Positions 15,901 to 39,900 are shown, counted from the stretch's first letter. The stretch is DNA of 64,000 nucleotides from Amphiscolops sp. MND2022 (GCA_964187785.1 OZ076418.1:23126001-23190000), one strand, 5' to 3'. Made by a program: numbers and translations. The notes: a model not told the origin generated them from the sequence alone.

Positions 15901-18900
15901 GACAAGACGCCATCTGTGCACCGGGATATTTTTCGCCCTGATTATTATTAGCAACAGAAAAATTCTAATGCTCGAGCGTAGCGAATAAACTTAGGCAAAC
16001 TAAACGGCTCAAAACTAACCTCAATGTTTCTGAAGAAAATTGCTAGTTTCGATTTCACTTTTGAATTTTTGTTCAAAAACACTCAGATTCCTCTTCTTAA
16101 AAGGTATGCTAGAAGCGTTGATCTACAGATGAAATATCTCTAAATAGAAAGCTACTATTTCAGCAGCTTTGAGTTTCAGCCTATAATTTCAAGTATTTTT
16201 GTCAGGAAAAGGTCTTCGACTGATTCCGAATTAGTATTATTCAATATTCTCGAACTGGATTTTTACATTTTTTGATGCTTTAGAAATGCAAAGAGTTGCG
16301 ACTATTTTTAATAAAAAGTGAGAAACTAGAAAATATGGATTTGTACATCGAATAAGAGGGACAATAACTTTTAACAGAAGATTCACTGTTCTCCCGTGGA
16401 ATCACCTAATTGGTTCATGGCCATAAAAATGATTGAAACGAAATTGAATTTTAGTTGAACTGATTGAGGTGGTGGTTGTTTCTTCAAATTTACATTTACT
16501 TGACCAGTTTAGTTATTAGTTAAACTATAGTTTTATACTATAGTATAAAACAGCTCAGAGGCTAATTGTTTCGTCGTTAAACTCTAGATATTATTGCCAA
16601 CAAAAAAATCAAAAACTGTATAAAAGCCATGAAAAAGTCAACAAGGGAAGTTAATCACTCGTGTTACCATAAAATCACCTTTTAGAAACATTTTGACACT
16701 TTCAATTTTAGGTAACGTTTTTTTAAAGTTAAGATATCCTCATAACTATGTAGGCTAAAAGTTATTTTTTCGCCGTTGAATTCTGTACGAAAATCAATAA
16801 AACCTTCACAGTAAATGTTAGACTATGGCTGAATTAGAAAAAAATAGCCAGCCGAGAAATTATTTCTCTTCCCATAAAATCAGACAGTCCAAAAACTTCA
16901 TAGCTGAAACTATAACAGTCTATGGGTAGAGATGGAAGGGAAAAGAAGTGTCAAAACAAAAAAGAACGCACGATGAGTAAGTATCCGTTTCATTTTTAGG
17001 CCATTCATAACCAGGGAAACACTTTTCACTATAGAAAATTCAACAAGACGCCCGCTGAGCACCGGGATACTTTCCGCGACACGCTTATTGCAAAAAAAGT
17101 ATGGCGAAGGAGAGGTTCGAACCCACGACCGACTGGCTGAGAAACAAAAAAATTCAAGCACCAGCACGGGCTCGAACCCATGACCTCGTGTCTACCAGGC
17201 ACATTACAGTGCACAGGCAAGCTATTTTGCTGTAGGCAGACGCACTACACACTGGGCCACGGTGATTAAAATATGCAGTAATAAAGTGGAGTTTTGGCAG
17301 AATTTGTAAAAAAAAAACGCATCACAGATCATGATTTTCCTCTCCATTTATGTGGGCCGAAAATAAAAAGAAATCAATATAATAACACAGAGGCGAAGCG
17401 GTGCTTCGCAACACATGACGAAGACAACGATTATTATTAATATGCGTATGTATATTATTTTAATCGCATGCGTATATATATTCAACAGTTCAACTTTATT
17501 CAATAACGTCCTTATGGCACAGTGGTTAACATTTATGCCGCGCAATCGGCTGCAGGTTCGAATCTCTCTGGGGTTTTGGCTTTTCTCTAAAAGGCGCTTA
17601 TTATGAAGTTGGCTATTGTGGAAAAAAACTTTCTTAGCTGGACTGCAATGCACATTGACTTCGTCATGTGCAAAAATAGGCCCCTCCGGGCCACACTATT
17701 ATTTCTGCTTTTCTCTTTCATTAATAATAGAATCATATCTTGAATACCAATAGACTCTTGTTTATTCATTATTTAGCGCACAATTACATGTAATCACTGT
17801 ACAAGTTTACACCGCCTTTAATTCTTCTCGGACTAAAGAAAATATAACTACTAAGCGTAGACGAAGTTTCGCATTCGCATTTGAATGCAGGCGAAACTCT
17901 CGGCGAACGAAGAATTAACACTCGTTCGCTTCATCTCAATAACTCGGCGTACGAATGCATAATTACCACTCGCTCGTTCCATCGCAGGAGAATTGAATTG
18001 TTGTCGGCAGCTTGAGAAATTTAATTCTCTCGCTTATAGCCACTGCCGAACAAAATATCTGAATTATTCAGTATCGCGACGAGAATTTTACTGAAAAAAG
18101 TAGACATCTTGAGGTTTCAATAATATTCCTGCTTTCGCAGAAATAATAATATGCATACCTGTCTAAACAGATAAACTTCTCTGAACTTCAGGGATATGCA
18201 GCGCTTCAAGTGTGGGTTCTCTATTTCCTCCCGGTTAGCAGCGTTGAGGAAGTCCAGAGCAAACTCCAGAGAAAACCGTTCCAAGTTTTTGAGCATAAAC
18301 AAGTTCCGGATATGTACATTTTGGATTGCGAAAACTTTGTCTCCGTCTGCAAACGCCTGAACGCAGAGAAGCAAGTCAAATAGAGGCTGAAATCTTGCTT
18401 CATTCACACTTTCCTGCTTCAACAGATTCATCATCATTGCCAGTTTCAAACTGAGATCTTTGGAGTTTTCCTCGTTTCTTAGAATTGTCTGGAGATTCGC
18501 GAAACACCGTTTGACAACTTTGGGGCACTTGGAACCCGACAGAAGCCCATGCTCGGAGATGGCACATAGCAACTTCTGGAAACTTTCCGGGTTGGAGCTG
18601 GAGCGTCCAGACAAAGGTTCCAGAATCTTCTCGGCCCAGACTTTGTAAACTTTGAATGAGTCAGACACCTGGCAGCAGTGTTGTTCTTGAAAACATGAAC
18701 AACTGCGCTACAGAATGTTCATAAAAGTTGACAAAAAATTTGGTGGCATATACCTCGAGTCTTAAATACCCGATTTTCCATGGATCACATGAGAAAAAAG
18801 GAAATCCTCAATCTATAAAAATCATGTCCGAGCAGTTCAATTCCCGACATTTCAGTCCAAAAGATACCTTCAATATAAAATGTTAAATACTTTCAATATA

Positions 18901-21900: not shown

Positions 21901-24900
21901 AACCAGCGATCGTGTTGAAGTCGTACTGTACCTACAGTTACAAAGTTCGGTTTATTACATGTTCAGTTGAAGTTCAGGAATACTACTGCGACTATTGTCT
22001 AAATCTAGATTTAGAAATTGAAATTCATGAACTTTCTGAAAACAAACTTTTCTTTCTGAAAACAACGTTTCATGCATTAATTGCTCGCTCATGTCGTCAA
22101 AAGTTTCAATGATTTCAAAACTTGTGTTCGGTGAGACATGAAAATCCATAAAGACGAGCATGAACATATCTTGCTTTCTGATATATTGACATCACAAAAA
22201 GTTTCCTATAAAAATTTCTATGCTCCGATACTTTAAAGCAGGGTTGTAAAAAACATTTACATTTAAATATATTCATATTTTTAAAAATATATATTAATTT
22301 TTCAACTCAAACAAACAAAATACATTATTTTTAATGTTGAATAATTCTTCAGAGGAAATACTTTGCATAGCTAGCATTGAAATGTTTAATCGCACTTCTA
22401 ATATTGTAGAGCGTCTCTTCAGTCGTGCAAAGCTGACACTTGACGATTGGAGAAAACGAGTGTTGCTAATGCATTTCGAACAAGTCTTCCTATTTGCTAA
22501 CAAAAGTTCATGGAACATCAAAAATGTTGATAACGTTGTTGCTGAAATTGGATAAATATATTTTTTCAAGAAAAATACCTATTTTTTAAGGGAGTCATAT
22601 TTATAAAAGTATTTTTCTTCCAAAATAAATTTAAAAATATATATTTTTTACAACTCTGCTTTAAAGCTAACTAGTATTTGGTTGTTCCGCACTTTCTAAT
22701 ACAGTTGAATCCCCCTAACCCGCATTGTTAGGGACTGAATAAAATGGTACGAAAAATGAGAAATACCAATTAACCGGATGGTATTACTTTGGTCGTCATT
22801 AATGGGGTCTCTGATAAATACGAATTAAACGAAGACACGCATTATCCGGATATGAATTAAGCGGAGTTGAATGTACTTTACCTTCCAACTATGGAATGTT
22901 TCGAAGTCATTGCAAACATCCACTTGATAGATGCCTTTGGACGCCAAAGCCTTGAGAGAGTTCATCTCTTCCGGTTCCAGGTAGTGCTCCAGGAAGTTTT
23001 TGAACAGGTCGAAGTTAGCGCCGCCCGAGATCCAACTGTAGTAGTTGGGGGAGGCACTCAGTCTGAAGTCCGACTCATACTTGTCCCACAGGTACTCTTG
23101 CAACAGCTGCGGCACTTTCACTCCCGTTCGACTGAACTGAACAAACTTCTGCAGCCAATCATTCTTCGAGTTCTCCACTTGTTCTCTCATCTCTTCTGGT
23201 TTGACGATCTAAACAACATAAACAAGTTGACAACATCACAGATGATTTTTATAGAAAAGGTTTGCGGCTAAATATGAGTAGTTCAATTCCTCATCTTGAT
23301 TGAAAGCAGTGCTTTGGAGTCAAGGCAACAGGAACTTGGAACAGTTGACTCACAGCAAGACAGTTCGAAAGCGTGATACCTCGAAAACTCACCGAATTTG
23401 ATAAGGTTTGCCAAGGGCTTGGTTCAAGCTTTTCAGCTGACACGAGAGTGGCGTGGTAAATGTACCAGCTAACTTATAATAACCAGAAGTTCGTCAGCAA
23501 CTTCGTCGTCGAGAATTACGTTATTCAAAAAATTGTCTCAAGCCTGCCTACTACGAATCGTAATTGATTAATTTCATACTGAATCACTAAACTGAATTAA
23601 TTGATTATTGCATGAATTAAAGAAACAATTAATTGTGCTATCAATGAGAAGTACTATCACTGATTATCAGTAACCGGAAAAAAAGTAAAAAAATACTGCT
23701 TTTCTGACTGGGGAGAAAAAAAAGGGACCCTATTAGCAGTAATTTAAAAAAAGTTTCAAAAGTTTAATTCTAGCTGTCTTGGGAAATAGTCGATTATCAT
23801 AGCTTTTGTACACATTGCTTCCACGTATATTTGATTTTTTGCGCAATTTTTAAACAACGTTTCAAGTGTATGTTGCTAAAATAGTTCAATATCTCGTTGC
23901 CCCGTGAGAATGATCACATAATTGAACAATTAAATTAATATCTCATAGTAAACACTTTTAATTTTAACAAGTCGCCCGCTAAGCACCGGGATATTTTCCG
24001 CCCTCATCGCCTTCGCCAACTGAGCCACAGATGTTTTGGGAGGGGGAATAGGATCTTCTTCCCGTCTTGAAATTTTAGATCTTATTCCCTTTAGATCTTA
24101 TTCCCTTTAGATCTTATTCCCTTTTTTGACTTTAGATGTTATTCCCCCTCTAAGCTATTTTAGTTACTTGACTATTTTAGTTGACTAGTAACTAAAATAG
24201 TCAAGTAACTAAGTGAAGATTGTAGAGACGAGTGGAGTTATGGCAGAATTTGGAAGAAAAAACGCATCACAGATCATGATTTTCCTCCCCCAAATAAATT
24301 TGTAGGGTCGGAAAATAATAAAAACGACAACAATTTCCAACGATGAGATCTCTGACGGCAAAACTTTCGGAGTTACTGATACGACGAATTTGCTCCCGAC
24401 GATATTGGTGACGGAGAAACATCTGGCGACAAAAATTATGCCGACCTTACTTATAGCATAACAAGTAATCAATAAATTTGAAAATTTTTTTGTGCCATCA
24501 GTGTTTGTCATGAGGTTGGTCCGAGCGGTGGACTATGAATTTTATAAAGAACATTTTGTATCGCTTTTATACTTCAGATTTAGCCTGGGTTATTTTCCTT
24601 TACTCAGAGTGAATAAAGTTTTGTTGAAGAAATTAGTTTTAATGTTGAAGAAAAGTTGAAGAGAAGTTACAACTGAGTAATATAATTTACAACAGTTAGA
24701 GCGAGTGTTCTTTAGATTGAGAAAGTTATCTTCTGGTCTTGTGTTTGACCACTTCGTCGTATCGTCATCCATCTCAGTGTTGTCAGCCTCTGATTGGTCC
24801 ACAACTTTTATTGGCTAAATACATTCTGTCTTCGAATTTTTGTAAATGTATCATGATTGTACCATGACACTCCCCACTTTTAAGAAAAAGGGGAACTGCC

Positions 24901-27900
24901 GGGTTGTAGTCCATGTCAGGGCGGAGATGGTGAAGTGGCATGAAACAAAAGAACGCAATGAATCCGTGAAACCAAGAAGAGCCAACACATATGCCCGAAA
25001 GGAAAAAATTAAAGAATACATATGACATAAGGGGGGGTGCCTCGAAAAGAAGAAAGAAAAGAAAAGAAAAGAGCATGTGAAGCATGCAATACAGAAAAGT
25101 TATGCTAAAAGTTACAAGGAGTGACTGTATGAAAAGAAGGCAGCAAATCAGTAAACAGTGAATCAATGTTGACTGAGTGAAGCAGAGGAAGAGCAACGTT
25201 GTTTGTTAACAAAACTTATGCTCGAGAGGGCACGTGGCAACATGTGCCAAGTGTAAGCTATGGTATTTGCTGAGCAAGAAAACGGGCTGCGATAGTCGCA
25301 GATAAAGCAAAAGAGGGGCCTTGTCGATGATTAACAGTGCAAAGAAGAAATAACAAAGGACGGAAAATTTTATTATTACAGTGATCGGTTAATCTGTGTA
25401 TAACAAACACGAAGAGAAAGGTATAACATAACCAAAGCGGAAAGTGTACAATGTCTCAAGAAAATAAATACATTGATAGCGGATGTGGATTACAGAGTAA
25501 GCAGTAAGAGGGGGCCAGAGTCAAATATGAAGCAATGACTCAAGAGGAAAAGACAATGAAATATACAACGAAGATACAAGCGGACAAATGATCGTCCAAA
25601 GGTCAGTGAGAAGAATATCGCACTGTGATCAGAAATTATTAAAGAAGCGGGTATATATTAATGAAAAACAGAACTGCTGAGAAGACACCAAAAGGAAGGG
25701 GTTACAATATCAGAGTAACAGAGCACAGAATGTTTTGAAAAAAAAAGATTGATGTTAGAATCTGACTGTGAAGCAGTCAGAGACTGTTTGAGTGGAGCGG
25801 TAAAAGTGACGAACAGAGTAACATGAAAGTACAATAGACATGTACTGAAAAGAACACACAGCACTCGAAAGTCCAAAAGGACGGGCGAAATGGCGCTATC
25901 AGAGAACGCCTTGATACATCAGAGGGGGATGGTTGTGTAATGTTGATCATTAGTTACATTTTCGTGGAGGAGACAACGATTTTGCCAACGAAAGTTGGGG
26001 TCAGTGCGGAGGATGTCCATATGGTGTGTGGGGACAGATAGCACTGGTTTTAGTGGTATTGTACGTTTGACGTTGTCTTTATCTTTGTAAACATGTTTAA
26101 AAGGCATGAATTTATGTAATTTATTACAACGAAGAAAAATGTACATGAATAAGAGATGTAACAACATAGATATTATAAAACTTGCTATACCTATTATTAT
26201 AGTGGATGTAAAAGGAGTTACGTGGCTAAGTTCGCGTCAAAAAGGAGTCAGATTTGACGGAGACGGCGAACTGAGGGAAAGGAAGGAGAAATTCCACATT
26301 AATAAACTTTTCAGCGAGCAATATTTTTTTGTTCTCATGAAAGATGATGCCTTTTTTCAAAGGACCATCAGAATCGTCGAAAGCAGCAATCGGCGATTGA
26401 GTAATGCCCAAATATGGAAGGAAGAGAAACAAAAAGGATATGCAAATCCCAAACATTCTGCGAGATGGTTCAGGGCAAAACGCGATGGGACGATGATCTT
26501 TAGAATTATTGGTATGTGGAGAAATTTGATTTATAACAATGTGATATTTCAAATTGAAAGTGCAAGTTTGTGAAAAGAAAATATCAAAGTTGAAATTCTT
26601 TTGTTCGAGTAGGTGGTGTGATCACAAGAAAGATTCAGAAGTCGAATGATCGACCAAAAATGGAAATCGTACGATATTAGGATGGACAAATGCGTAGTTT
26701 GCTATTTAAACCGGATGTTTGAGAAGTTTTGTCGAATCTTCAAGAAGCGAGACCAAGTTTCGTATTTGAGTTTGTGAATTATTCATTTAATAAGTAGTCG
26801 TCTTGTTTGAGTCTCATTGTTGCAGTCTTGTTGAGTATCATCAAAAGTCGTTTATCTACTACTAACTTCAAACGTAAGTGTGTTTAACATGTGTATTCGA
26901 GTTCTTCAGAGTCTGTCAAAATGAATTGCCCAATGGCAAAGTTTAAAGATTTTTTGTTGTGGTGTTGTCCTAAGGGGACATACGTTGAACGAGGGGGCGC
27001 CTCCTCTCGTTTACGAAGAGTCCCCGACCCGAGTGCTCGCTGCCACCCGCGACAGTGACAGAAGAGACCGGGGCCAGTCACGTTGGGGTATGGGTGAGCC
27101 TGATTTTATCAGTGCTCATCACAGTAGTGCTGTGCCTATGTTGTCGAGACTGCCGAAAACAACAGGCAGAGTTTGAAAAAGAAGAGAAAAAGGAAGAAAA
27201 AGAAAAGAAAAAGGAGATACCAAAAAGGGAAAAGAAAAAGAAGTCAGTCGGACTAAAAGCTAAAAGGGCATATGAACGGAAACAGAAGGAAAGACGGCTG
27301 AAGAAGACGAAATACTGAAAAGGCGAGAATAAAGGAAAAAAAAGGACAGTCAAACAGTTGTGGGGAACTAGAAGATAGAGAAAAAAGAAAAAAGAGAGAA
27401 AAAAACAAGAGAAAACGGTGAAGTCTCCAAAAAAGTAGATTACTAAAACTGTGTAGTTTGTATGAATTGTAAACAGTACGACTAAAAACGAAAGAAGGAA
27501 AAAAACACAAAAAAGAAAAAGAGAAAAAAAACAATTAAAAGAGACGAAAAAGAAGAAAAAAATAGTTACAGTAAAACAGTGAGAAAAAGTAAAAAGTTTG
27601 GCTGCAAAGTCTTTTGTTTGAGTTAGCAAGTAGTGAGAAGAAAGTAGCAGTGAAAAAAACATATGTTGGTTGTGGTCTAACGAAGTCGGTGGTTTGTATT
27701 TCAGATCGTCATAATGGAGAGATTTTTGCACGAAGCTATCGTGAAGTACTTGAATGATGGAGTGCTCGATACATCAGTATTGAAGACGTCAGAGAAGAGG
27801 GAGAAATTTAAGAAGGTGTGTCGCAGTCTGAAGGTGGAAAAGGGTGTGCTTATGTATAAGGGGAGAAGAAACGAGTTCTTGCCAGTTCCAACGCCAGAAC

Positions 27901-30900
27901 AAGTGGACAATCTCCTATACAAAGTTCACGTGAAAAAGTGGAAAGAAGGAGAGAGCGATGTCGGAAAGAAGCACTACCGGGGGGTACAGCTTCACATCGA
28001 CGACTTGTCTGGAGCCGGGTGGGCGTATCCAGCATCACTGGGAGGCCTGAAGGCGCTAGTAAAAGAGTAAGTTACGTTGGACATTTTCTAATGTATATGT
28101 ACAATATGCGTTGTCTTTCTTGTGAAATATAGTGTGCAATATGCAAAAAGGAATAGGAATGCAAAGAAAACACAGAGTATACAAGTAGGAGTGTTGACAG
28201 GTTCTTGCATGATTGCCAAACTTGCTACTTCGACAGTGAAGAGGGGAAGCGGTCACACTTGTATAAGCCTGTACCGCTGAAACGGAGAGTCGAGCTTTGT
28301 GAAAAGTTCGGTTATACGTGTATTTGGGAACCCATCAGTGGGAAACAGACCAATAGCACGGCAGTGGTATTGGACTGTCCGAAGAGGAAGGAGCCATTGG
28401 GCGAGCTGGCAGAAGTCGGAGGCGAGTGTTTCTTCTCCAGTAAATACTATTTGATGGTTGGAAGGAAATCAGGTAAGAGGATTGTTTTTTTTGTAAAAAA
28501 AATTGTGAAGCATAAAAAAAAACTGTGAGCGAAAAGTTTATTATATATAGAACGGAAGAACAGTGCACCAAGTAGGAAGTGCAAGGGGCTGCGTGTGGCA
28601 GCTACAGAGGCGATGCAGACTGCCGAATTTGAGGAGTACTGCCGTTCATGTCTTGGGACCGCGCCCAACGATTTCTTGGCACAGGAGTGTGCAAAAGTGA
28701 CGGCCAGCATTTCCGAGGCGGCGGTAAGGGTCAGATGATGGCCTTAATATATGTATATTTCCCTTGTAAGGATGAGGGGCTATGTAAATTCAAAAAAATT
28801 GTTTCAGATCTTAGCAACTGCCTGGGTACTGCAAACAGACCTCATTGTGTACTGGCAGTATTGGAATATGGGCGGCTGGATCCGGTACAAATACGGACCA
28901 GAAAGCAATGGGCGAGGAGGCAGCTTCTTGTGCCAAGCCATCCAGGGCGGCGAGAGGTTCAGAACTCGCTTTCATTGCGAACCGTTGCCCGATTTTCCAG
29001 AGCCAGAGTAAGTAATAACAAAATTACAGAGAATCAGTAAACAATCCAAGGGTATTTTATGAAAATGAGCATATTATTATTAGGTTACGAACATCAGTGA
29101 GGGTACGAGGGCCTGTAGTGGATCCCTGGGAGGAGGAGGGAGAACAGGGAGCCTGTGGGAGTAGTTCTGCACAACCGTAGAGGTTAGAAAATACACATTT
29201 ATTGTGAAAAAACTAAAAAAGTCAAAAAAGAGCAAGTTTTTTACACGTTTTTCGGGTGAAAAACCTGGAAAGGTTCTAGGCAATGGGTATATTTATGCAG
29301 AGGAATATCGTATAGAGCTATTAGAGGGGTTTTGCAACCATTCCGGGCGCAAAAATGAGAGAAAAAGACATAAAATTGTCGAAAAATGCAATATGTGATA
29401 GGAAGGCCAAAAAGTCCCCCAGAGAAACTTTTTTTTTAAATTTTTTTCGATTTTTCCAACTTTTTTGCTTAGATCGAAAGTTTGGGGTAAAAAACTGGCT
29501 TCACCGATATTCCGGGATCAAAATTCCAAAAAATGGGATTTTTAGGGGTCTTTGAGGGTCAGATTTTTCAGGGGTCAAAAAATTGGCAATTTTTTCTGAA
29601 AAACAGCTAAGTAAAAGGGGTTGGTATTGGACCTAGGGGCCTGAAAACTATACCTAGAGGGTGTGGGGGGTCCCACAGTGAGAATGGGGTATCATTCAGG
29701 TCAATAGGGAAAAAGTATGATGCAATTTTTGGTCAAAAATGGTCGAAAAACAGCGATTTTCGAAAAAAAAATCGAAAATTTTATCCAAAAATGTCAAAGA
29801 AAAGGGGGTAATTCAGGGCTTTAGGTGGGTGAATTAGGAACTAGAGGGATAGCAGAGGGTAGTAGAAGGCGCAAAGGGTACATTAAGAAAGGTTAGGTAG
29901 GAAAAAATAGAAAATTTATCCAAAATCATGGAAAAAATGGTGTGAAAAATTACAGTAAAAGTAGTGTTATTTCCATGGTTTGGAACTAAAAAAAGATGTA
30001 CGGCTCGGTTTGGGTCGTAAACGAGTGTCACGACGGTTAGAGGAAGCTGAGGTGGTGATCGTAACAGTGGATGGAGTGGTAGGAGCAAGAGTGTTTCGAA
30101 TAAGAGTAGTGGGTACAGTGTGATCTCGAATGAAAGCATCAAGATCGGTGATACGTAACACAGGTGTAGTAGATGGGCGGTATGACGGGGTTCCTCGTGG
30201 GAAAGGAGAAGTATCAAAAGGGTTTGGTGCCGTAGGGGGTGAGGTTGGAGGTGTAGGGGTAGTAGGACGCGGAATGCGTGATGATGGTGGGCGAAGATAC
30301 ACCGGTTTCGAGTTAGGTTGGCTTGGATAAAAAGGGGTATTACAAAGGTCAAATAAAGGTGGTGGATTCGAATGAGGGTTATTACGAGGTGGTGACGCAA
30401 TAGCGCGTGCTCGATTAACGAGAGTTTCCGAAAATCCCGAAAACGAAGAGGGCGAACTCTCATGACCGGGGGTATATATCGGTATACGTTCCGAGTGATA
30501 AGGGGGCGAAGCTGATTGCTCCAAGTCCCGGGTTGGTATAGGTAAATTGGGTAATCCAGAAGGACTAGGAAAGTTAGAGGATGAAACATGACTTGAAATA
30601 GGGGTAGAGTGCATCAAAGGTTGGCGACGTGTCGAAGAGGTAATAGTCGTTGCTATACCAGAAGTCGGGTGAGCGACAGTAAAAACATCGTCAGAAGTAA
30701 ATGTTGTTTCTGGGGTGGAAAAAAATGAAGAATGGGGCATGTTTATGGATGAACAGGGTGTTCCTGAGGAGGAGGAAACGAAAAATGAATGATGATGTTG
30801 ATCGTGGAGTGGTACAGTCGAAGTATCAAGCCAAGCTTGATAAATAACGGGAGGAAGATCAACATGATTTTCTATGTGTGGGAAGTCGCGGTTAGGAGGG

Positions 30901-33900
30901 ACTTCAGGAGGAGGTAGGGCATGTAAAGGCTGCGGTAGGCCCGGAGGGGGTACCAGGAGAGCCGGTGGTGCCGGTGGTGCCGGGGGAGCCGGTGGTGGCG
31001 CCGGTGGCACGCGACGGGGAACATAGTGAAATACGACGGCTGGCGTGTCATCAACTTCGTCTGCCGTAGTAAACATACGATCGGTTAAAAGGTCTGGAAG
31101 AGCCTGATCAAAGAGGGCGGGCTCTGAGACGTGTCTCGTGGAGGGGTCAGGAACAAAATTAGACTGGTTGATATTAGAAATATCATCGACTGTGTATTGT
31201 GGTGTGATGGGACGAAGTCGAATTCGATGTACACACTGAGTGTAATTGGTGCCTACCTTTCGAACGATGTAATTTGAGTTCGTTAGTACAGATTCAACTC
31301 TATACAGAGGTAGCCATTTGATGAGCGATTTTCCCATATGGTCGTTGGTATTTGAAAGTTTTGGATTCAAGAGTAAACAAAACGAATGTTTTTTCAATGG
31401 GGCGGCTGACGCTTTTCGGTCATAGAAATGTCTGTATTTATTGTAAGCAGTGATGGTAGCATCACGTGCTAGAGAGAAAACTTCGTTCATTTTATCTTGA
31501 AGAGTACTCGTGAATGCATAGCGTGTTTCAAGGGTTTGCAAATGTTTATTATCGAACCGTAAATCAAGTTGTGAATGGGGTTGTCGGCCATGGAAGAAAA
31601 ATGTTGGAGTGCATCCAGTAGAAGCATGGTAAGCCGTATTATGTACAAACACGGCCAGATCTACGTATTGGTGCCAATCACGTTTAATTTTGTTCTCATA
31701 TATGCCCAGATACTGTTTCAGAGACGCATGAGAGCGCTCGACGGACCCAACAGTTTGTGGGTGTTTTACAGTGGCATATTCTAGTTTGATTTCAAGTAAG
31801 CGACTTAGTTCAGTCATGACACGGGAGGTAAACGCGGTTCCCATATCCGAAAGAACAACTTTTGGTATATAGGCGGATCTCATAAAAATGTGAAATTAAT
31901 GTTTCGCAACATTTGGTGCGCTGGCGTTGCGCAGAGGAGTCGCAAAAAGATATTTACTAAAAGTGTCTTTGGCTGTGAGGATATGTGTGTACCCAGCAGA
32001 ATCGGGTAGTTTACCTACAAGATCTACTTGAAGCATATCACCTGGATAGTATTTGTCAGTCGCAAGGGACAAAAGTGGTGTTTTCAACGTTTGATGTTTA
32101 ACGGGTTTGATTTGTGGACAAGAGCTACAATTTTTTACATAATTGGCTAGAAATTCAACAAAACCAGGGAAATAGAAATGTTTACGAAAGAGTTCTGCTG
32201 TTTTAGCAATGCCAGGGTGGCCTGCATACTTGCTATTATGGACTCGATAGAGAACTTCATTTCGCAAATGTTGGGGAACGACATATTGGCGAATAAAATT
32301 TCGGCCAGTGTCATCAAAAAATTTACGGTATAAAATACCTTGGTGATTTTCTAAACGGTCAAAGTGTTTGAGATACTTCCGAAGTTCCGTACTCATATAA
32401 GGAAAGTCAGAAGGCGGTCCTGTTTCTAACCATGATAACACTAATCTAATAGTGTTATCTTTTTGTTGTTCCTCACGCAAATTTAAGGGTGTTAATTTAT
32501 CAGAAAGGTCCAAATCATCCAAAGGGTTCGGACAATGGAGGGCGTTAATTTCGGGAAAAGATTCACGGAGACTTTTCGGAAGACTGAAGGTTTCACAGTC
32601 AAATTTAAAAGAATTTACAGAATTGTCAGGGACCTGCATGCCCATATGGAGGTGGACATCAGCTACAGGTATTTTAGAATTGAAGCGGAGTTCTAGCTTA
32701 GTGTGTGGTTGGATATGAATTCTAGACAGATAATCTGCCGCTGCATTGGCTTTTCCTGGTATGTGACCTAGGACAAAGTTAAAATTCAAAACGTGATCCA
32801 CACACGTCCAAAAGCTTGACGGAATTGTTTTAGCTTGAAAAAATCTAGTTAGACTTTTATTATCGGTTAGAACTAACACTGGTTTAGAACTTCCCCATAA
32901 GATATGTGCAAATGTGTCAAATGCAAAGTGCACAGCTAAAAATTCCTTAGCATAAATGGACAGCTTTAAATAGGTTGGGGTGAAGATCTTAGAACCAAAA
33001 GAGACTGGTACATAAGTCTTGTGAGTTTTGCCTGTTTGATCAATGGAATAGTCTTCAATTAAGAGGACATATCCAGCTGCGTAGAAACTAGCATCAGTTA
33101 AGATTACATATTGTGCATTTGGTTTAGGTAGGCGGAGCGACATTTGACATGCTTGTTCAAGATCTTTTCGTAAAGTAGTGATACTTTTATGGTGTTCTTC
33201 TGTTAAAACAATATCTGATTCTTTTCGTAACAATTGGTAGAATGGTAGCAGTTTTTCACCAAGTTTGGGAATGAATGAACGAAAATACTGGAAAAAACCA
33301 ATAAATCGTCGAATCTGCTTTATGGTTTTAGGAGGTTTCAGAGTGGCTAAAAAATCTGTTACTTTCGTTTTGTTGGGAGACATTCCTTCGCTTGTAATCG
33401 TATTTCCCAAAAATGTCATTTCTTTTAGACCAAATTCGCATTTACTAGGTGTGAGTCGTAGACCTGTCTTTTGTATACATTCAAAGATGGCTTCTAACTT
33501 GGCAATAAATTCTTCAAAGGTTTTAGCTGCAGTGCCTAGATCATCAACATATTGAAAGCACTGGTCGCCAACTATACAAGGGTATAAGTATTTTCGCATG
33601 AAGGAACTAAAGGCGCTAACTGAGCGGCTTAGTCCTTGAGCTAAGCGCAAATATGCGAATGTCCTTGAAAGAAAATTGAAAGCCAGCAGTTGCACTGACA
33701 ATGGGTCAGCCATTTGTAGGACATGATACGCTTGACTGCAATCCAATTTTGCAAAATACTTCTTGCCTGCCAGATGCGCATTTACATCTGCTAGTGTTGC
33801 TATTGGAAAATTGTGATTATCGTAATTGTGCCTGATTAAATGATTGATTCGTCTAAGGTCTACTAAAATTCGCAATTTACCCGAGGGTTTACGGACGGCA

Positions 33901-36900
33901 AAAATTGGGCTTGAGTACTTAGAGTACGTCAAGGTTGTTATTACTCCCCAATATTGCAAAAGTGCCAATTCCACTAGAACTTCATCGCGGTAGTGAATCG
34001 GGGTCGGTGGACCTTGGGTATACATCGGCTTATCATTTTCAGGAGTAAGTTTCACTTTAAATTCTTCATTTGCTCCAATGTCTAAGCGATGTCTTGCGAA
34101 AATTCGGTGGTATTTTAGGAGTAGCGTTTCAACTATGTTAATCTGTTCAGCGTTAAAAACAGAGTTTTCCCACGTAAATTGTGATAGAAATTTCTTTCGG
34201 TCTTCTAAATTTTTGTCTGGTTGTAGCTTTTCTCGTGCTTTTAGAGCAACGATCTCGTCATAAATTCTTTTGTGAATTGCTATGAGGTTTTCTGGGTCTT
34301 TGCAATTTTCCGGTGTAGGAAACCAAAACTCATCTGTTGATGGGTATACTTTGGTTTCAGAGTCTTCAATGAGACCATTAATGCTTTTAGTTAAATGGTC
34401 AAAAAGAAGTTCAGGATTGATAGGGTGCAAGTATTGAGCTTGCTTGGCTGTCAATATTGTTACTTTTGCAACAGGAACATTTTTTGTGACTGTTACTTTG
34501 TATGGCAAGATATTAAGTATCCCGAGGGAAACTTGTTTTTGGTCGTTCAGTTTTACAATTGCGCTGGTGACGCAAAGTCCTGTTTGTTTTTCAAAACGCG
34601 GATTCGGTTCTACAATAGCTACTGTTCCTTCAGGGAAGGATTCAGCTGAGAGAGAACAAGTGATTATTTCGGATGTATTCCGTTGTACCGAATAGTTTTG
34701 AATAGAGTGTAAGAAAAGGTTTTTCTTCGGAGTAAGAGAACTTACTTTTCCGTCTTTATGTATCCGTTCGGTCAATTGTAAAGTCATATTGGGTAGTTTA
34801 AGCGTTCTCGTTCTAGGGTGAATAGAAATATCATTTTTCTCGAAAAATGGTAGTCCCAAAATTGTCTGGTTCATGGTTTGCATTAAAATGAAAGTTTCAG
34901 TGAAAGATTCACCTGCAATTTTAAAAGAAGCTCGAAAAGTAACCATAGGTGGTTACAGAGTCACCATTTGCCACTTTCACAGAGCTAGTTGCTGGATTAT
35001 AGTTTGTTATAGCTTTTGGACAAAGACGTTGTAGTTTTTGGAAAATTGTTATGGGCATGGCGCTTGAGAAAGCACCTGTATCGATTAAAGCTTTAACTGG
35101 GAAACAAAAATTAAGTGGTACAGAGAAAAGTGAAGCGCGAGGCTTTGAGGAAAGGATGTTTATAAATGATGAAGAGTTAGTCATATTAGTAGATAAAGAA
35201 GGAGAAATATGGGCAATGTGTGGCTTACTTAGTTTTTTGGATTGGAGGCTTGTTGATTGACGTCATAGTGGGGTGACCAATATGGAGGCATTTGAGTGAT
35301 GGGTACCATCTGCTGAGGCTGCATCATAGGTTGTGGAGCTGTGAAGTTCGGCGCTGAGTATTGGGTATATGGTAGGGCTGGAGGTTGATGTTGTTGTGGA
35401 CGGAACCAGCATTGTGAGAGTATGTGTCCGAACTTGTTGCAATAGTTGCAGTATTTTTGACTAGATTGCGCAGTATTGTTGTTTCGTTGCTGATTCCAGT
35501 TGGGTTTCTGATTTTGCCAATTTGGGTTTGGCGGTCGTCAATTTTGCTGATTGTTGTTGTTGTTGTTTTTCCAGTTCTGCTGGTTGTTTCTCCATTGCTG
35601 AGGGTTGTTTCCACGGGGACCATTATTTTTGTTCCAATTTTGCTGCTTGTTTTTGTTGTAGTTGTTGTTTTTGTTGTTGTTATTGTTATTGTTTGTAGAC
35701 TGAGCCGTAGTTAGCTGATTGATAGTAGGTTGCAAGGTTTTAGTCAATTCCTGCAAATCGGTGGACAACTTTCCAGTTTCTTGCTTGAGAACATCTTGTG
35801 CTTTTGACAACTCATGGATTCCTGTGAGGAGATCTTTTGTGGAGAAATTCTGAAGCTCGTTGAAGGCGGTTTCGTCATCTTCCGGGTAAAGACGATCTAC
35901 AATCATTCTGCTAGAAGCTTTTGCGCATAACTCCTCAATTGGAGTTTCGTCTGGTTGTGTCATTAAGAAACGTTAGATAGGCATTCCATTATTGAATGCT
36001 TCTCTCACTCGTCGTGTTCTTTCTTGAGCACGATCTTCTGCTGCTACTGCAGGTCGTCCTCCTGCGGCGGCTCTTGCTACAACGTTGGGGTAGGCTTCCA
36101 AAGCCAATCGTTGCAATTCAGTAAGGAAATCCTGAGCGCTTTCCTCAGAGGGTTTCATTTTGCGGGAGTTGAAAAGCAACTTTTGAAGCTGAATTCTCTG
36201 GTCGTTTTGATATCTGTCACGTAGGGCTGCTACTGCTTGATCATAGTCATCTCGAACTGCTGCTTCTTGTTGGTCGAAAAATGTGAGTGCACCTCCTTTC
36301 AGATGAAGGTGTAGGTATCTATGTCTGTCACCATTAGGTACAGCAGCAACTTGAATACAGCTTTCAAGTTGTCGTAAAAATTCATTGAGGTTTTCCTTTT
36401 CTGTGCCTTTAAAAGGCTGTAGGTCAACGAAAGGTTGAATAGCGGCCATTTGAAAGTTTTGTGAAGAGAAACAATTATGAAGAATGTGTGTAGAATGAAA
36501 ATTTTATGGAGAATTTCAGGCAAAATTTTGTAGATTATCAACTGGAATCGATGAGCATAGCTATGTTTTAATCAGAAGTTGTTGTGTTTCAGTTGTTCAG
36601 AAAGAAGGCCGAGTGAACAGGAAAAGAGACTCCTGTCACCATGTCATGAGGTTGGTCCGAGCGGTGGACTATGAATTTTATAAAGAACATTTTGTATCGC
36701 TTTTATACTTCAGATTTAGCCTGGGTTATTTTCCTTTACTCAGAGTGAATAAAGTTTTGTTGAAGAAATTAGTTTTAATGTTGAAGAAAAGTTGAAGAGA
36801 AGTTACAACTGAGTAATATAATTTACAACAGTTAGAGCGAGTGTTCTTTAGATTGAGAAAGTTATCTTCTGGTCTTGTGTTTGACCACTTCGTCGTATCG

Positions 36901-39900
36901 TCATCCATCTCAGTGTTGTCAGCCTCTGATTGGTCCACAACTTTTATTGGCTAAATACATTCTGTCTTCGAATTTTTGTAAATGTAACATGATTGTATCA
37001 TGACAGTGTTGTCCGAGCGGTAACCTATTATTTTAAGAAGAATAGAAGAATTGTATTCAGACTACTTTACGAAGACTTTAGAATTGTTGTTGACTTCAGA
37101 TTTCTTGCTGGGTCATCTTTCCTTATCTCAGAAAATAAAAGTTTCATCATGTATGATTCTTTATTTGTTCCCCTGCTATTGGTCCAGAGTTCTGATTGCC
37201 TAGACTCTGCCTTTAACGAAATTTTGTAATATCATCAGATCTTTCATGATGAAGTCATGACAATTTCCAACTTTTGGAAGCATTTTCTGTGAGAAAAACA
37301 TCAGGTTTCCCTTCTTAAAAGCGTGTTGGATACCTTATTGTGTCATCATCTCTGGATATTTTAGCCCTTAGAAACTTTCCAAAACTGTACAAAATTGGAA
37401 GGAGTAAAAGATGTATTTGAAATTTTTGAAATTCATAACTGAATCTTCATTGAAAAAACTTCTGTGTGCGTTTTCAATGGTGACCTGCTATGTTTTTAGA
37501 GTGTGACAGTAACTTAGCAACCATATGCTCGGTTATTGAGAAATGGCTATTTCTCTGAAACGTAAAATTTTGCAAATTTCCATTTTTTTCCAGTGGGGGC
37601 TCGGAAAAAGCTATATTTACACAAATAACAACTCACCCTCGATACTCCAAAAGATTGTCGATAAGAAAAAGAAATTTTCGATTTCTTATATTCGTTTTGC
37701 GTTTCGTATTTTTTTATTGATTGCGAAAAGAATCGCTGTCATCATTTGAGGACAAAATCACTGTCGAGGTTATACAGAAGTAATAAAAAACATAGTAGGA
37801 ACCTCCAAACGTCCTATTTTTCAAAAAAAGTCTTATAGTACTGAAACCTGACCCAAAAAGCTTTACATTGGACGCAAATTATGTGAAATTTTTGGGGAAA
37901 ATCGATAACGTTATACGAGAAATGAAAACGTTATAACTGAATTTTGAAAACGTTTTATCCGAATTTATGTACCTGTTAGATGTTATTGATGTCCTAAGAA
38001 AGTTGTCTGCAAGTTGAACAAAATGAACAGAATTGATTGATAAAAATTGATAAAATTTGTCACTTCCTCGGTCTTAGAAAAGAAAAGCCACTACTATAGT
38101 CTGCACTTTCTAAGAAAGTGCCTACTTGAAAAACGAGGCCCAGATAGTAATTTTTCTTACCCATGTTTCCCATGTGGAAATATGGGCGGAAAACAATAAA
38201 CTTGTCTGTAAACGTCGTAGTCATTCCTCTTGGAGGCATTTTCACTTCTAGTAATCAAGAAAAACGTGATTTGAGTTATCGTTTAAGGTGATTATTGATT
38301 CTAAAAAGCTGGAATCAAACCTGCAAGACGGGTGAGAACACGGTGCAGTCAATGAGGAGAAATTGTTCCTCTAGATTGTTGAAATTTTTCACAGATTCGA
38401 CCTGAAAAGGGGAAAAGATTAAATACCTTGAAAATTCCAAGACGAATTTCGAGATACTTTAATTGCTCAGCCAATATAATCAAATTCTGCTCTTGACGAC
38501 CATCCAAGCACTAAGCGTAGAAAATGAAAACATTTATCGTAACTCATCAAAGATTTCATTATTTGATAAACATCGTAGATGTAATTCATAGCTTTCGTTT
38601 CCTGTTTAGTTTTTCATCGCTTCTTCTTACGATTTATAAAATGTGCTCTGATCAACTGAACTTCTTTATTGGACAACTGTTATCATAATAGTGATAATAA
38701 TCACACAAACAACAATTTTCGGAGGGTCAAAAAGTCAAAATTTGGTATTCAAATCAATTTACGTGTTCTAATTTATCCTTCTTGAATGAAAAACATTCAT
38801 CATTTCTTTCTAAGAACAACTTTAGTCTTAGGTTTTTTAAAGAAAAATTAAGTTCAACCTGGAGAGTAGAAAATGCTTCCAGGGCATCAAAGAAAGGTTT
38901 GACGAAGTTGGGCGCCTTCCAGGGTCGTCTGCCTTTCCTGAGGACACAGTTGCGTATCTGCCAGGCACTCAGGGTTCCAAACTCGCCCAGAGAGTACTCA
39001 AGTCGCAGCTCGAACGCCAGTCTTTCCAAAACTGATCCCCCGATAATACAGGATAGCCCCATGTGGTCTTTCTGGCTCTGAAACGTCTCAGCTCTGGAAA
39101 CTAAATTCAAGAGAGTTCACTGGAAAACTTTTTGGAAGTTCAAGTTCCATGTCTTGCACTGACGCCCCGATGAAAAGTTTTGCTGTAGTCAATGAAAAAA
39201 CTAATTTAACGACTGATTATAACATTTTTGAAGGTTAAAGTAAAAGTAACCAAGACTGATCTGAGTCGCTTGCTGTTACGCAGAGACGATGGCGATCGCT
39301 AAACTGAAAATTAGTGCGTCTTTGATGACACCGCGTATTTAACCGAGCAATCACAAACGATTCAATTCCACTCACAAGGTCGCTGAATCACTATTAAAGC
39401 GATTCAAAGTTTAAGTTCTGTATCTTCAGAACTAAAAAACAAGTCGTGAACGGCCCCAGTCGGCGCCCCGCTCAAGGCACAAAAAAGTACCCGGGGGTCG
39501 TAGATTTAGTATCTCTTGTTGAATAAAGATTTTTCAAAAAAAACTTACAGTACTGAAAACCTGACCCTAAAGCTTTAAATTGGACGCAAATTATGTAAAA
39601 ACTTGGGGAAAAAATTGATAACGTTATACGAGAAATGAAAACGTTATACCCGAACTTTGAAAAGGTTACATCTGAACATTGAAAACGTTTTATCCGAATT
39701 TATGTACGTGTTAGATGTTGTGTATACTCTAAGAAAGCGCCGAAAAATTTTCGGAGAAAAGACTCACAGTGCACAAAAAAATCAAAGTTAAAAACATCAA
39801 GGTAACCGAAGGGGACCCTTGGTTTGTTTGCGAGGTTATAGTACGTTTTGTAGGCCCGTAGTTCACTTGTCTGCAAGTTGAACAAAATGGACAAAATTTA

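Follow-up and report, generated by a model that had tools for sequence, protein, structure and literature searches.

The window analysed here, a stretch of 64,000 nucleotides from Amphiscolops sp. MND2022 (GCA_964187785.1 OZ076418.1:23126001-23190000), contains a 12.5-kb LTR element whose gag-pol runs on the minus strand. The element is bounded by two LTRs of 364 nt with TG..CA ends, the 5' LTR at 36642-37005 (-) and the 3' LTR at 24506-24869 (-), which are identical except for 2 positions and are flanked by a 5-bp target-site duplication, GTGTT, with the left copy at 24501-24505 and the right copy at 37006-37010. In addition, contigs from DNA sequencing runs diverge exactly at 24506. A polypurine tract lies next to the 3' LTR at 24870-24883 and reads ..AAAAGTGGGGAG on the minus strand, whereas the primer-binding site lies next to the 5' LTR at 36625-36641 and reads TGGTGACAGGAG... 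on the same strand. The gag gene occupies 35232-36449 (-) and has two copy-specific premature stops, at 35975-35973 and 35540-35538, its natural stop being conserved in sibling copies. The pol gene, at 29967-35262 (-), encodes protease, RT, RNase H and integrase, with Pfam matches to RVT_1, RT_RNaseH, Integrase_H2C2 and rve; it carries a third copy-specific premature stop at 31898-31896 and its protease segment is out of frame with the rest. Remnants of an env-like gene, N- and C-terminal pieces, are found at 25919-26552 (-) on either side of a 1.68-kb deletion at about 26246. A sibling element, L032, has 1677 extra bases at this place, carrying sense-strand ORFs of 238 and 461 aa with a fusion-peptide-like stretch and a C-terminal membrane anchor, although no Pfam match was obtained for them, and the DNA runs show loose ends at 26237 and 26247. 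A second plus-strand ORF, at 26921-27318 (+), corresponds to a small Cys-rich single-pass membrane protein with a K/E-rich tail. It is frameshifted near 26990 in this copy, but it is open for 135-160 aa in the siblings L032 and L037, is conserved between subfamilies, and is also present in L060, a contig from another assembly.

Between the two LTRs, and opposite to gag-pol, lies the intron-containing gene that is the subject of this work. Joining 27714-28066, 28201-28472, 28551-28723 and 28808-29011 (+) gives 1002 nt and 333 codons without an internal stop, with donors GTAAGT, GTAAGA and GTAAGG and AG at all acceptors. The observation made in the preliminary description, namely an open, intron-containing gene antisense to gag-pol within a Gypsy LTR element, is confirmed. 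Exon 1 (27714-28066, aa 1-117 plus 2 nt) encodes a part resembling the N-terminal extension of integrases, with both His of the HHCC motif, and is followed by intron 1 (28067-28200, 134 nt). Exon 2 (28201-28472) contains the CxxC of the zinc motif, a variable linker and the invariant Cys box AEVGGECFFSS.YY. Intron 2 (28473-28550) has 78 nt here, but its length varies from 61 to 79 nt among copies while the exon length is fixed, and its position is conserved in fragments from other assemblies. Exon 3 (28551-28723) corresponds to the helical middle of the OTU-like domain and is followed by intron 3 (28724-28807, 84 nt). Exon 4 (28808-29007) contains the ILATAWVLQTDLIVY helix-strand and the F-H-C-E-P box (His322, Glu324), and it is the most conserved exon, with 86-88% amino-acid identity in distant subfamilies.

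The preliminary gene model, ending at 29011, is probably one exon short. The TAA at 29009 overlaps a donor, GA|GTAAGT, that is conserved in all subfamilies, and a probable intron 4 of 76 nt (29008-29083) separates it from a probable fifth exon at 29084-29180, which would add a 31-aa acidic, Cys-containing tail plus the stop and give a protein of 364 aa. The GTRAGT donor and the (Y)nAG acceptor are conserved in almost all copies compared, with intron lengths from 74 to 87 nt. The exon is fixed at 96 nt after the split-codon base in nine of the ten copies compared (the remaining one, L002, has a 2-nt deletion), the stop position is conserved as TAG or TAA, and dN/dS is 0.08-0.25. No canonical poly(A) signal follows exon 5. 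On the other side of the gene, a TTTCAG acceptor-like site at 27697-27702 (+), 6-12 nt upstream of the ATG, is present in all three subfamilies compared and might mark a 5'-UTR intron, a suggestion based on sequence alone. No RNA run was found to contain the sequence, and the four runs that do contain it behave as DNA, cover the introns and show no intron-skipping joints.

The gene is real and under selection, far beyond what chance would give. At least 44 copies exist in the genome. Of 20 full-length sibling copies that were aligned, 9 are fully open with the same exon lengths and splice sites, and two copies of a distant subfamily also have the intact gene with identical exon lengths. Intron lengths vary and are not multiples of three, while exons never vary. 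Third codon positions are 75% identical against 96-97% at second positions, the introns being 76-80% identical between subfamilies. The value of dN/dS between subfamilies, for which neutrality had been set beforehand as a refuting outcome, is 0.06-0.11 at dS 0.45-0.6. The OTU half is the most constrained, with a dN of 0.12 against 0.54 in the linker when dS is saturated. The preliminary description also stressed that the gene is intact whereas gag and pol carry three nonsense codons and a frameshift. These lesions are indeed present, but the contrast is not informative, since four lesions in about 6.5 kb predict about 0.7 in 1.1 kb.

The position of the gene is equally constant. It sits at the same place in all 12 loci fetched with pol flanks, antisense after pol, including subfamilies with only 55-65% identity in the N-terminal half, and the same order is seen in L060. 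It might be argued that this is a host gene, or a host-domesticated one, that merely hitch-hikes in the element family, so that its conservation would reflect host function. In this sense, one relative (L059) has no LTR-type pol within 10 kb, and the gene is not strictly tied to LTR elements. However, we consider this possibility very unlikely, as there are dozens of copies, always at the same internal position and orientation, their divergence roughly tracks that of pol between the close and the distant subfamilies, many copies are decayed, and related genes occupy the same place in BEL/Pao elements.

The relationship of the C-terminal half to OTU-like cysteine proteases (Pfam PF02338) is supported indirectly. 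The Pfam OTU model does not hit the four exons when scanned separately, nor two read-through pieces (P0015 and L002:1502-1981), and a six-frame search of the genome with PF02338 does not list any of the copies. The link is provided by an intron-less gene family (L051-L053 in this genome, and P0035 in contig L058 from another assembly), which is Pfam OTU-positive (E 5e-6) with a weak Integrase_H2C2 hit (E 0.1), and whose best PDB sequence hits are OTUD3, OTUD1 and OTUD5 at the Cys box. This gene lies tail-to-tail with BEL/Pao integrase or pol and has the same two-module architecture, a similar length (323-347 aa) and the same position after pol, although in a different retroelement superfamily, at about 20% identity, and with a canonical GDGNCLFRA Cys box and an H-x-D box. 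Comparison of the profile of the spliced family with that of the L051 family is collinear over the whole length, with P 2e-6 global and 3e-5 local, 9-13 sd above column shuffles. The OTU halves alone give P 1.3e-4, cross-domain controls are not significant, and raw exon-fragment alignments give P 1.3e-3 and 4.9e-4 at the expected places. The Cys box is invariant in 11 fragments, a 30%-identical relative having GYGQCLFSS, and (F/Y)-H-x-E-P is kept in 12 of 16 exon-4 fragments. The acidic residue three places before the catalytic Cys, typical of many OTUs (DGNC), is Gly here (GGEC); a conserved Glu two places after the His could take its place, as the Asp does in the H-x-D of the L051 family.

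The N-terminal half resembles the integrase N-terminal extension plus the HHCC zinc domain (Integrase_H2C2, PF17921). Exon 1 alone gives no match to the Pfam profile, because the domain is split by intron 1. Nevertheless, profile comparison of residues 9-128 with residues 836-945 of the element's own pol gives P 1.5e-4, with a score of 30.9 against 12.7 +/- 2.8 for shuffles (z about 6.5); for scale, Gypsy against BEL integrase N-termini reach only P 1.1e-3 with the same shallow alignments. His72 is invariant, the second His is present in most relatives, with H-x6-7-H spacing in those lacking a 10-aa insert, and the CxxC is kept in those exon-2 fragments that reach the N-terminal part. When a predicted model of the window's exon 1 was compared with 48,161 chains, PFV integrase residues 8-90 ranked first and Ty3 integrase third. 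No DDE core follows the zinc domain, as only about 50 poorly conserved residues separate the CxxC from the OTU-like domain and there is no rve match.

We think, with moderate confidence, that this is an element-encoded accessory gene of an env-bearing Ty3/Gypsy-type LTR retroelement, placed between pol and env on the opposite strand. In this view, because it is antisense, its introns are not removed from the genomic RNA and are copied at every retrotransposition, and the gene must be expressed from its own antisense transcript. The integrase-like module would bring the protein to the element's own integrase, its pre-integration complex or the LTR DNA ends, and the OTU-like module, with Cys193, His322 and Glu324, would then remove ubiquitin or a ubiquitin-like modifier there, either from integrase or Gag, protecting them from degradation, or from host chromatin or repair factors at the integration site. 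This would raise the transposition success of the element. Our analysis establishes the structure of the gene, its position, conservation and purifying selection, the two homologies and the occurrence of the same architecture in BEL/Pao elements, whereas transcription and splicing, the OTU fold, catalysis, the substrate, docking and the benefit to the element are inferred. The interpretation given in the preliminary description is partly supported: the selected antisense gene and the integrase-type zinc domain hold, the OTU relationship holds indirectly, and the proposed deubiquitinase activity and counter-defence role are inference only. No paper describing such a gene was found, and this looks like an undescribed class of retroelement accessory gene.

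Two other functions could be envisaged for the same architecture. The protein might be a regulator rather than an enzyme, in which a free integrase N-terminal domain acts as a dominant-negative or copy-number-control factor interfering with integrase assembly, and the OTU-like half serves only as a ubiquitin-binding or structural module. The absence of both the DDE core and the canonical Asp before the Cys is in favour of this idea, and fragment-type self-inhibitors of retroelements exist, such as Ty1 p22. However, it seems unlikely to us, since the strongest conservation is exactly at the putative catalytic Cys box and the H-x-E-P box, which is the pattern that an active site predicts. Less likely still, the OTU-like domain could work as a conventional protease and not as a deubiquitinase, for example processing the env-like protein or cleaving a host restriction factor. 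Some viral OTU or papain-like proteases, such as arterivirus PLP2 and tymovirus PRO, do both jobs, and the complete element has the env-like gene and the small membrane-protein ORF next to this gene. Against it, the element has its own aspartic protease, there is no cleavage-site evidence, and the nearest Pfam-positive relatives match cellular OTUD deubiquitinases at the Cys box.

The closest precedent for the domain combination is the Ginger1 DNA transposon (Bao, Kapitonov and Jurka 2010, PMC2836005), found in marine and aquatic invertebrates, whose transposases combine a Gypsy-type integrase N-terminus (YPYY region, H2C2) with an OTU or Ulp1 cysteine-protease domain and are often interrupted by short introns. 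Ginger1 keeps the DDE core and the GPY/F motif in one polypeptide and is a TIR-bounded cut-and-paste element, while here the DDE core is missing and the gene is a separate antisense cistron inside LTR retroelements. The preliminary suggestion of capture from a Ginger-like element has no positive evidence, as no terminal inverted repeats flank the gene. A one-off nested insertion of a Ginger1-derived or other DNA transposon, or a chance open frame, is already contradicted by the presence of the gene in every sibling and in distant subfamilies and by a dN/dS of about 0.1. An ancient derivation from a Ginger-like gene is not excluded, but that is a statement about origin, not about what the gene is now.

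Other systems share part of this organisation. Viral OTU proteases (nairovirus L, arterivirus PLP2, tymovirus PRO) and cellular OTUD1/3/5 are among the closest known systems, although this family has GGEC instead of DGNC and no Pfam hit on its own. The antisense additional ORFs of the plant LTR retrotransposons Grande, RIRE2 and Retand (PMC7264820, PMC11963269) also lie between pol and the 3' LTR on the opposite strand, with their own promoter and a function thought to be regulatory, but they show no homology to this gene, have no recognised enzymatic domain and are mostly intron-less. Among complex retroviruses, HTLV-1 HBZ is a bZIP transcription factor transcribed from the 3' LTR, without sequence or domain relationship to this protein, yet it is likewise encoded by a spliced antisense-strand gene within an env-bearing LTR element.

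Reading positions 27400-29300 of the window and joining the four plus-strand segments named in the preliminary description gives 1002 nt and 333 codons with no internal stop, with the donors GTAAGT, GTAAGA and GTAAGG, AG at all acceptors, and introns of 134, 78 and 84 nt. The ORF list does split the gene into pieces, as had been stated. The observation made in that description is well supported. The gene lies between two direct repeats of 364 nt, at 24506-24869 and 36642-37005, which begin with TG, end with CA, differ at two positions and are flanked by the same five bases, GTGTT. A tRNA-type primer-binding site (TGG...) abuts the right repeat on the minus strand, whereas a purine tract abuts the left one. 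Gag and pol lie on the minus strand. Gag has a weak match to DUF1759, while pol matches RVT_1, RT_RNaseH, Integrase_H2C2 and the start of rve, so this is a Ty3/Gypsy-type element.

This copy of the element is defective. Three premature stops, at 35975-35973, 35540-35538 and 31898-31896, are specific to it, and the protease segment is out of frame with the rest of pol, whereas the gag terminator is shared by all siblings and is natural. The intact state of the antisense gene in this broken copy was considered as a sign of domestication, but this reading was rejected, since the expected number of lesions in 1.1 kb is below one. The copy also lacks 1.68 kb at about 26246, within the env-like region at 25919-26552 (-). 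In the sibling locus L032 that stretch carries sense-strand ORFs of 238 and 461 aa with a fusion-peptide-like stretch, a heptad-like region and a C-terminal anchor, so the complete element has an env-like gene. The env-like ORFs of complete siblings amount to about 700 aa in two frames in L032 (1062-3173, minus strand), and 756 aa are found in L060, a 13.5-kb contig from another assembly (5958-8228, minus strand), with a basic site followed by a hydrophobic Gly/Ala-rich stretch and a C-terminal anchor; a Pfam search gave no match for them. The complete order is therefore LTR, gag, pol, the antisense gene, the env-like gene and LTR.

The window belongs to a 1.07-Gb genome, in which a DNA search finds at least 44 matches at 69-98% identity. 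In an alignment of 20 full-length copies, 9 are fully open. The exon lengths are 353, 272, 173 and 204 in 10 of the 20 copies, including all but one of the open ones, and the splice sites are kept, whereas intron lengths drift (61-79 and 83-86 nt) and are not multiples of three. Between the two main subfamilies, second codon positions are 96-97% identical, third positions about 75% and introns 76-80%, and dN/dS is 0.06-0.11 at dS 0.45-0.6. A distant subfamily (L036 and L037) has 64% amino-acid identity in the N-terminal domain and 82% in the OTU-like part, with the same four exon lengths, canonical sites and an open frame. With dS saturated, dN is 0.12 in the OTU-like part, 0.28 in the N-domain and 0.54 in the linker. 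This is the signature of a protein kept by selection while the element lineages diverged, and a chance ORF was rejected as an explanation.

The model of the preliminary description probably misses a fifth exon. Its stop codon is the TAA of GA/GTAAGT, in which the GTRAGT is conserved in almost all copies; one copy has GTATGT, which removes the stop. A pyrimidine-rich AG follows 74-87 nt later, and after that comes a block that is 96 nt long (after the split-codon base) in nine of the ten copies compared, L002 having a 2-nt deletion. The block ends with a stop (TAG or TAA) at the same place, changes mostly synonymously and has dN/dS of 0.08-0.25, although a Pfam search with this exon gave nothing. 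The coding region therefore probably ends at 29180, and the protein probably has 364 aa. A conserved TTTCAG just upstream of the ATG suggests a 5'-UTR intron, while no canonical poly(A) signal follows on the plus strand.

The position of the gene is constant. In all twelve 10-kb stretches examined around siblings it lies tail-to-tail with pol, also where pol is only 80-85% identical, and contig L060, with pol at 77% identity, shows the same order of pol, antisense gene, small plus-strand membrane-protein ORF and env-like gene. No inverted repeats flank the gene, and a one-off nested DNA transposon is therefore excluded. The small plus-strand ORF, at 26921-27318 (+) in the window, at 3753-4154 (+) in L032 and at about 3470-3880 (+) in L037, is conserved between the env-like gene and the OTU-like gene and encodes a small protein with a Cys-containing N-terminal part (MNCP..LWCC.EGTY), one membrane span, CCR and a K/E-rich tail. 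It is frameshifted in the window copy and open in siblings, and it could be a separate antisense cistron or an upstream part of the same transcript. A long purine-rich, A-rich low-complexity tract lies upstream of the ATG at 27078-27640 (+); it is poorly alignable between copies (67-78% identity) and was skipped as a repeat when sequencing reads were placed. On the other side, identity is mosaic when window positions 29012-30400 are compared with 27714-29011 in locus L001 against loci L010-L013. The 3' flank (pol end) is 95.6% identical between two subfamilies whose antisense gene is only 89% identical, which suggests recombination between element lineages.

Direct searches did not identify the C-terminal half of the protein. 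Pfam gave nothing on each exon separately or on two natural read-through pieces, and a six-frame OTU search of the genome does not list these copies. An exhaustive HMMER search of 1.84 billion representatives with the read-through of exon 3, intron 3 and exon 4 found only 31 short ORF fragments, none of them a named family or a full-length protein. A search of the ESM Atlas by features gave no usable hit, and word-index protein searches with exon 1 and exon 2 returned only unnamed ENA fragments. A copy in which introns 2 and 3 are both in frame and stop-free, which would give a contiguous reference for the OTU half, was not found among 20 siblings or in the loci L059, L060 and L043.

The six-frame search did find a repeated intron-less ORF of 325-347 aa (loci L051-L053). 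It is Pfam OTU-positive (E 5e-6), with a canonical GDGNCLFRA box and a weak Integrase_H2C2 hit, and it lies tail-to-tail with an integrase carrying rve and DUF5641, the BEL/Pao type. A 40%-identical relative in another assembly (contig L058) follows a complete 1723-aa BEL/Pao gag-pol by 20 bp, again on the opposite strand. Such an intron-less H2C2-like plus OTU ORF, on the opposite strand right after pol, is carried by BEL/Pao elements in this genome (loci L051-L054 and L057, at contig positions C1:86.42 Mb, C3:92.75 Mb, C6:50.34 Mb, C5:12.73 Mb and C2:62.10 Mb) and in ENA assembly ERZ25074608 (L058:10001-16298). A profile of this family hits OTUD3, OTUD1 and OTUD5 first in the PDB, at the Cys box. 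The AF2 model of the intron-less relative has a confident N-domain but a poor OTU half, and Foldseek E-values were all above 0.1.

For comparison with this family, we built the spliced proteins of eleven open copies and added two partial relatives from other assemblies. The resulting profile gave a collinear alignment with the BEL/Pao-borne family over nearly the whole length (1-321 against 31-343), with P 2e-6 global and 3e-5 local. Column-shuffled controls scored 3.3 ± 2.3 against 34.1, and 15.9 ± 2.9 against 43.0, whereas a reversed control scored nothing. The OTU halves alone give P 1.3e-4, and cross-domain controls are not significant. Alignments made only of raw ORF fragments, free of our splicing decisions, agree, in that exon 2 aligns its CxxC and GGECFFSS with CxxC and GDGNCLFRA (P 1.3e-3), and exon 4 aligns ILATAWVLQTDLIVYWQ with IHAAASLLGIDVLVHWK (P 4.9e-4); an alignment mixing exon 2 and exon 3 fragments was misaligned and was left out. 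A plain BLAST gives the same register (E 0.009). Across relatives down to about 30% identity, including a Tara Oceans contig, the Cys box is the most conserved stretch of the protein; AEVGGECFFSS is invariant in most fragments, and one relative has GYGQCLFSS. The (F/Y)-H-x-E-P motif is kept in 12 of 16 exon-4 fragments. The Asp usually found three places before the Cys is absent, although the Glu two places after the His may replace it, and the BEL/Pao family has H-x-D there.

Concerning the N-terminal half, residues 9-128 align with the element's own integrase N-terminus, pol residues 836-945, which include the Pfam H2C2 match, with P 1.5e-4, or a score of 30.9 against 12.7 ± 2.8 for shuffles. 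For scale, Gypsy and BEL integrase N-termini reach only P 1.1e-3 with equally shallow alignments. His72 is invariant and the second His is nearly so, relatives lacking a 10-residue insert have the usual H-x6-7-H spacing, and the CxxC is kept wherever the fragments reach it. No DDE core is present.

A search for RNA evidence found the sequence only in four runs of one study, and these behave as DNA. Placing them on the window showed unspliced contigs across introns 2 and 3 and no intron-skipping joints at the predicted splice sites, which says nothing about expression. The mechanism that we propose is the following. An antisense transcript, whose introns survive retrotransposition because they are in the wrong orientation in the genomic RNA, would yield a two-module protein. 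The integrase-derived extension plus HHCC domain would target it to the integrase, the intasome or the LTR ends, and the OTU-like domain would remove ubiquitin or a ubiquitin-like modifier there. The main outside support is the parallel with Ginger1 transposases, which fuse a Gypsy-type integrase to OTU or Ulp1 in one chain, while the main rival is a non-catalytic regulatory role for a free integrase N-domain. The interpretation put forward in the preliminary description, an accessory deubiquitinase of the retrotransposon, is only partly supported: the gene, its constant place, its selection and its two homologies come from the analysis itself, whereas transcription, docking, enzymatic activity, substrate and benefit to the element are inferred, and we consider the function plausible.

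LTR retroelements of animals are usually described as gag-pol, with or without env, and antisense accessory genes are known mainly from plants and complex retroviruses, none with a recognised enzyme domain. Our searches of the literature available to us for OTU domains in LTR retrotransposons found them only in Ginger1 and Helitron/Helentron elements, and antisense extra ORFs were found mainly in plant LTR retrotransposons, with no enzymatic domain. Retroelement accessory ORFs and transposon-borne OTU domains are both known already, and what differs here is that a conserved, strongly selected antisense gene encodes what looks like a deubiquitinase tethered by an integrase-derived domain, with the same architecture in two LTR superfamilies and an echo of the integrase-OTU fusion of Ginger1 transposons. 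If the activity is real, it would give a direct handle on how retroelements deal with host ubiquitin pathways during integration, and the gene would also be a natural example of intron retention through antisense placement. It shows, too, that exon-by-exon ORF tracks hide such genes.

A broader possibility, which we regard as doubtful though not excluded, is that proteins joining an integrase N-terminal domain to an OTU domain are a mobile "adaptor deubiquitinase" module shared and exchanged among integrase-using mobile elements. It would act in trans and antisense in env-bearing Gypsy-type and BEL/Pao retroelements, in cis in Ginger1 transposases, and possibly also beside polymerase-B-bearing elements, docking on the intasome through its integrase-like domain and stripping ubiquitin from integrase, Gag or target-site chromatin. 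If so, control of ubiquitin would be a general, previously unrecognised requirement of integrase-mediated insertion in invertebrates. An AS-like gene (44-50% identity) lies in contig L059 at 9647-10839 (+), with no LTR-type pol within 10 kb, and it is 3 kb from ORFs at 13740-17630 (-) that match protein-primed DNA polymerase B (DNA_pol_B_2). This may be a Maverick/Polinton-like neighbour or only nested repeats. In addition, giant open frames of 2,200-2,800 aa in the genome under study, at C13:25.89 Mb (locus L049), C2:103.6-103.7 Mb (L055 and L056) and C1:3.61 Mb, contain an OTU domain and are probably Helitron/Helentron-type proteins; the OTU region of L049 gives a weak BLAST match to residues 177-287 of the antisense protein (E 0.035).

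Outside the element, other short dispersed or tandem repeat families lie at 37598-39737 and 48482-48575 of the window, and they are unrelated to the finding. In the genome as a whole, a first search with Integrase_H2C2 found 27,379 candidate integrase zinc-domain matches, many of them in identical 1610-aa open frames, so this genome holds a very large and partly young LTR-retroelement load.
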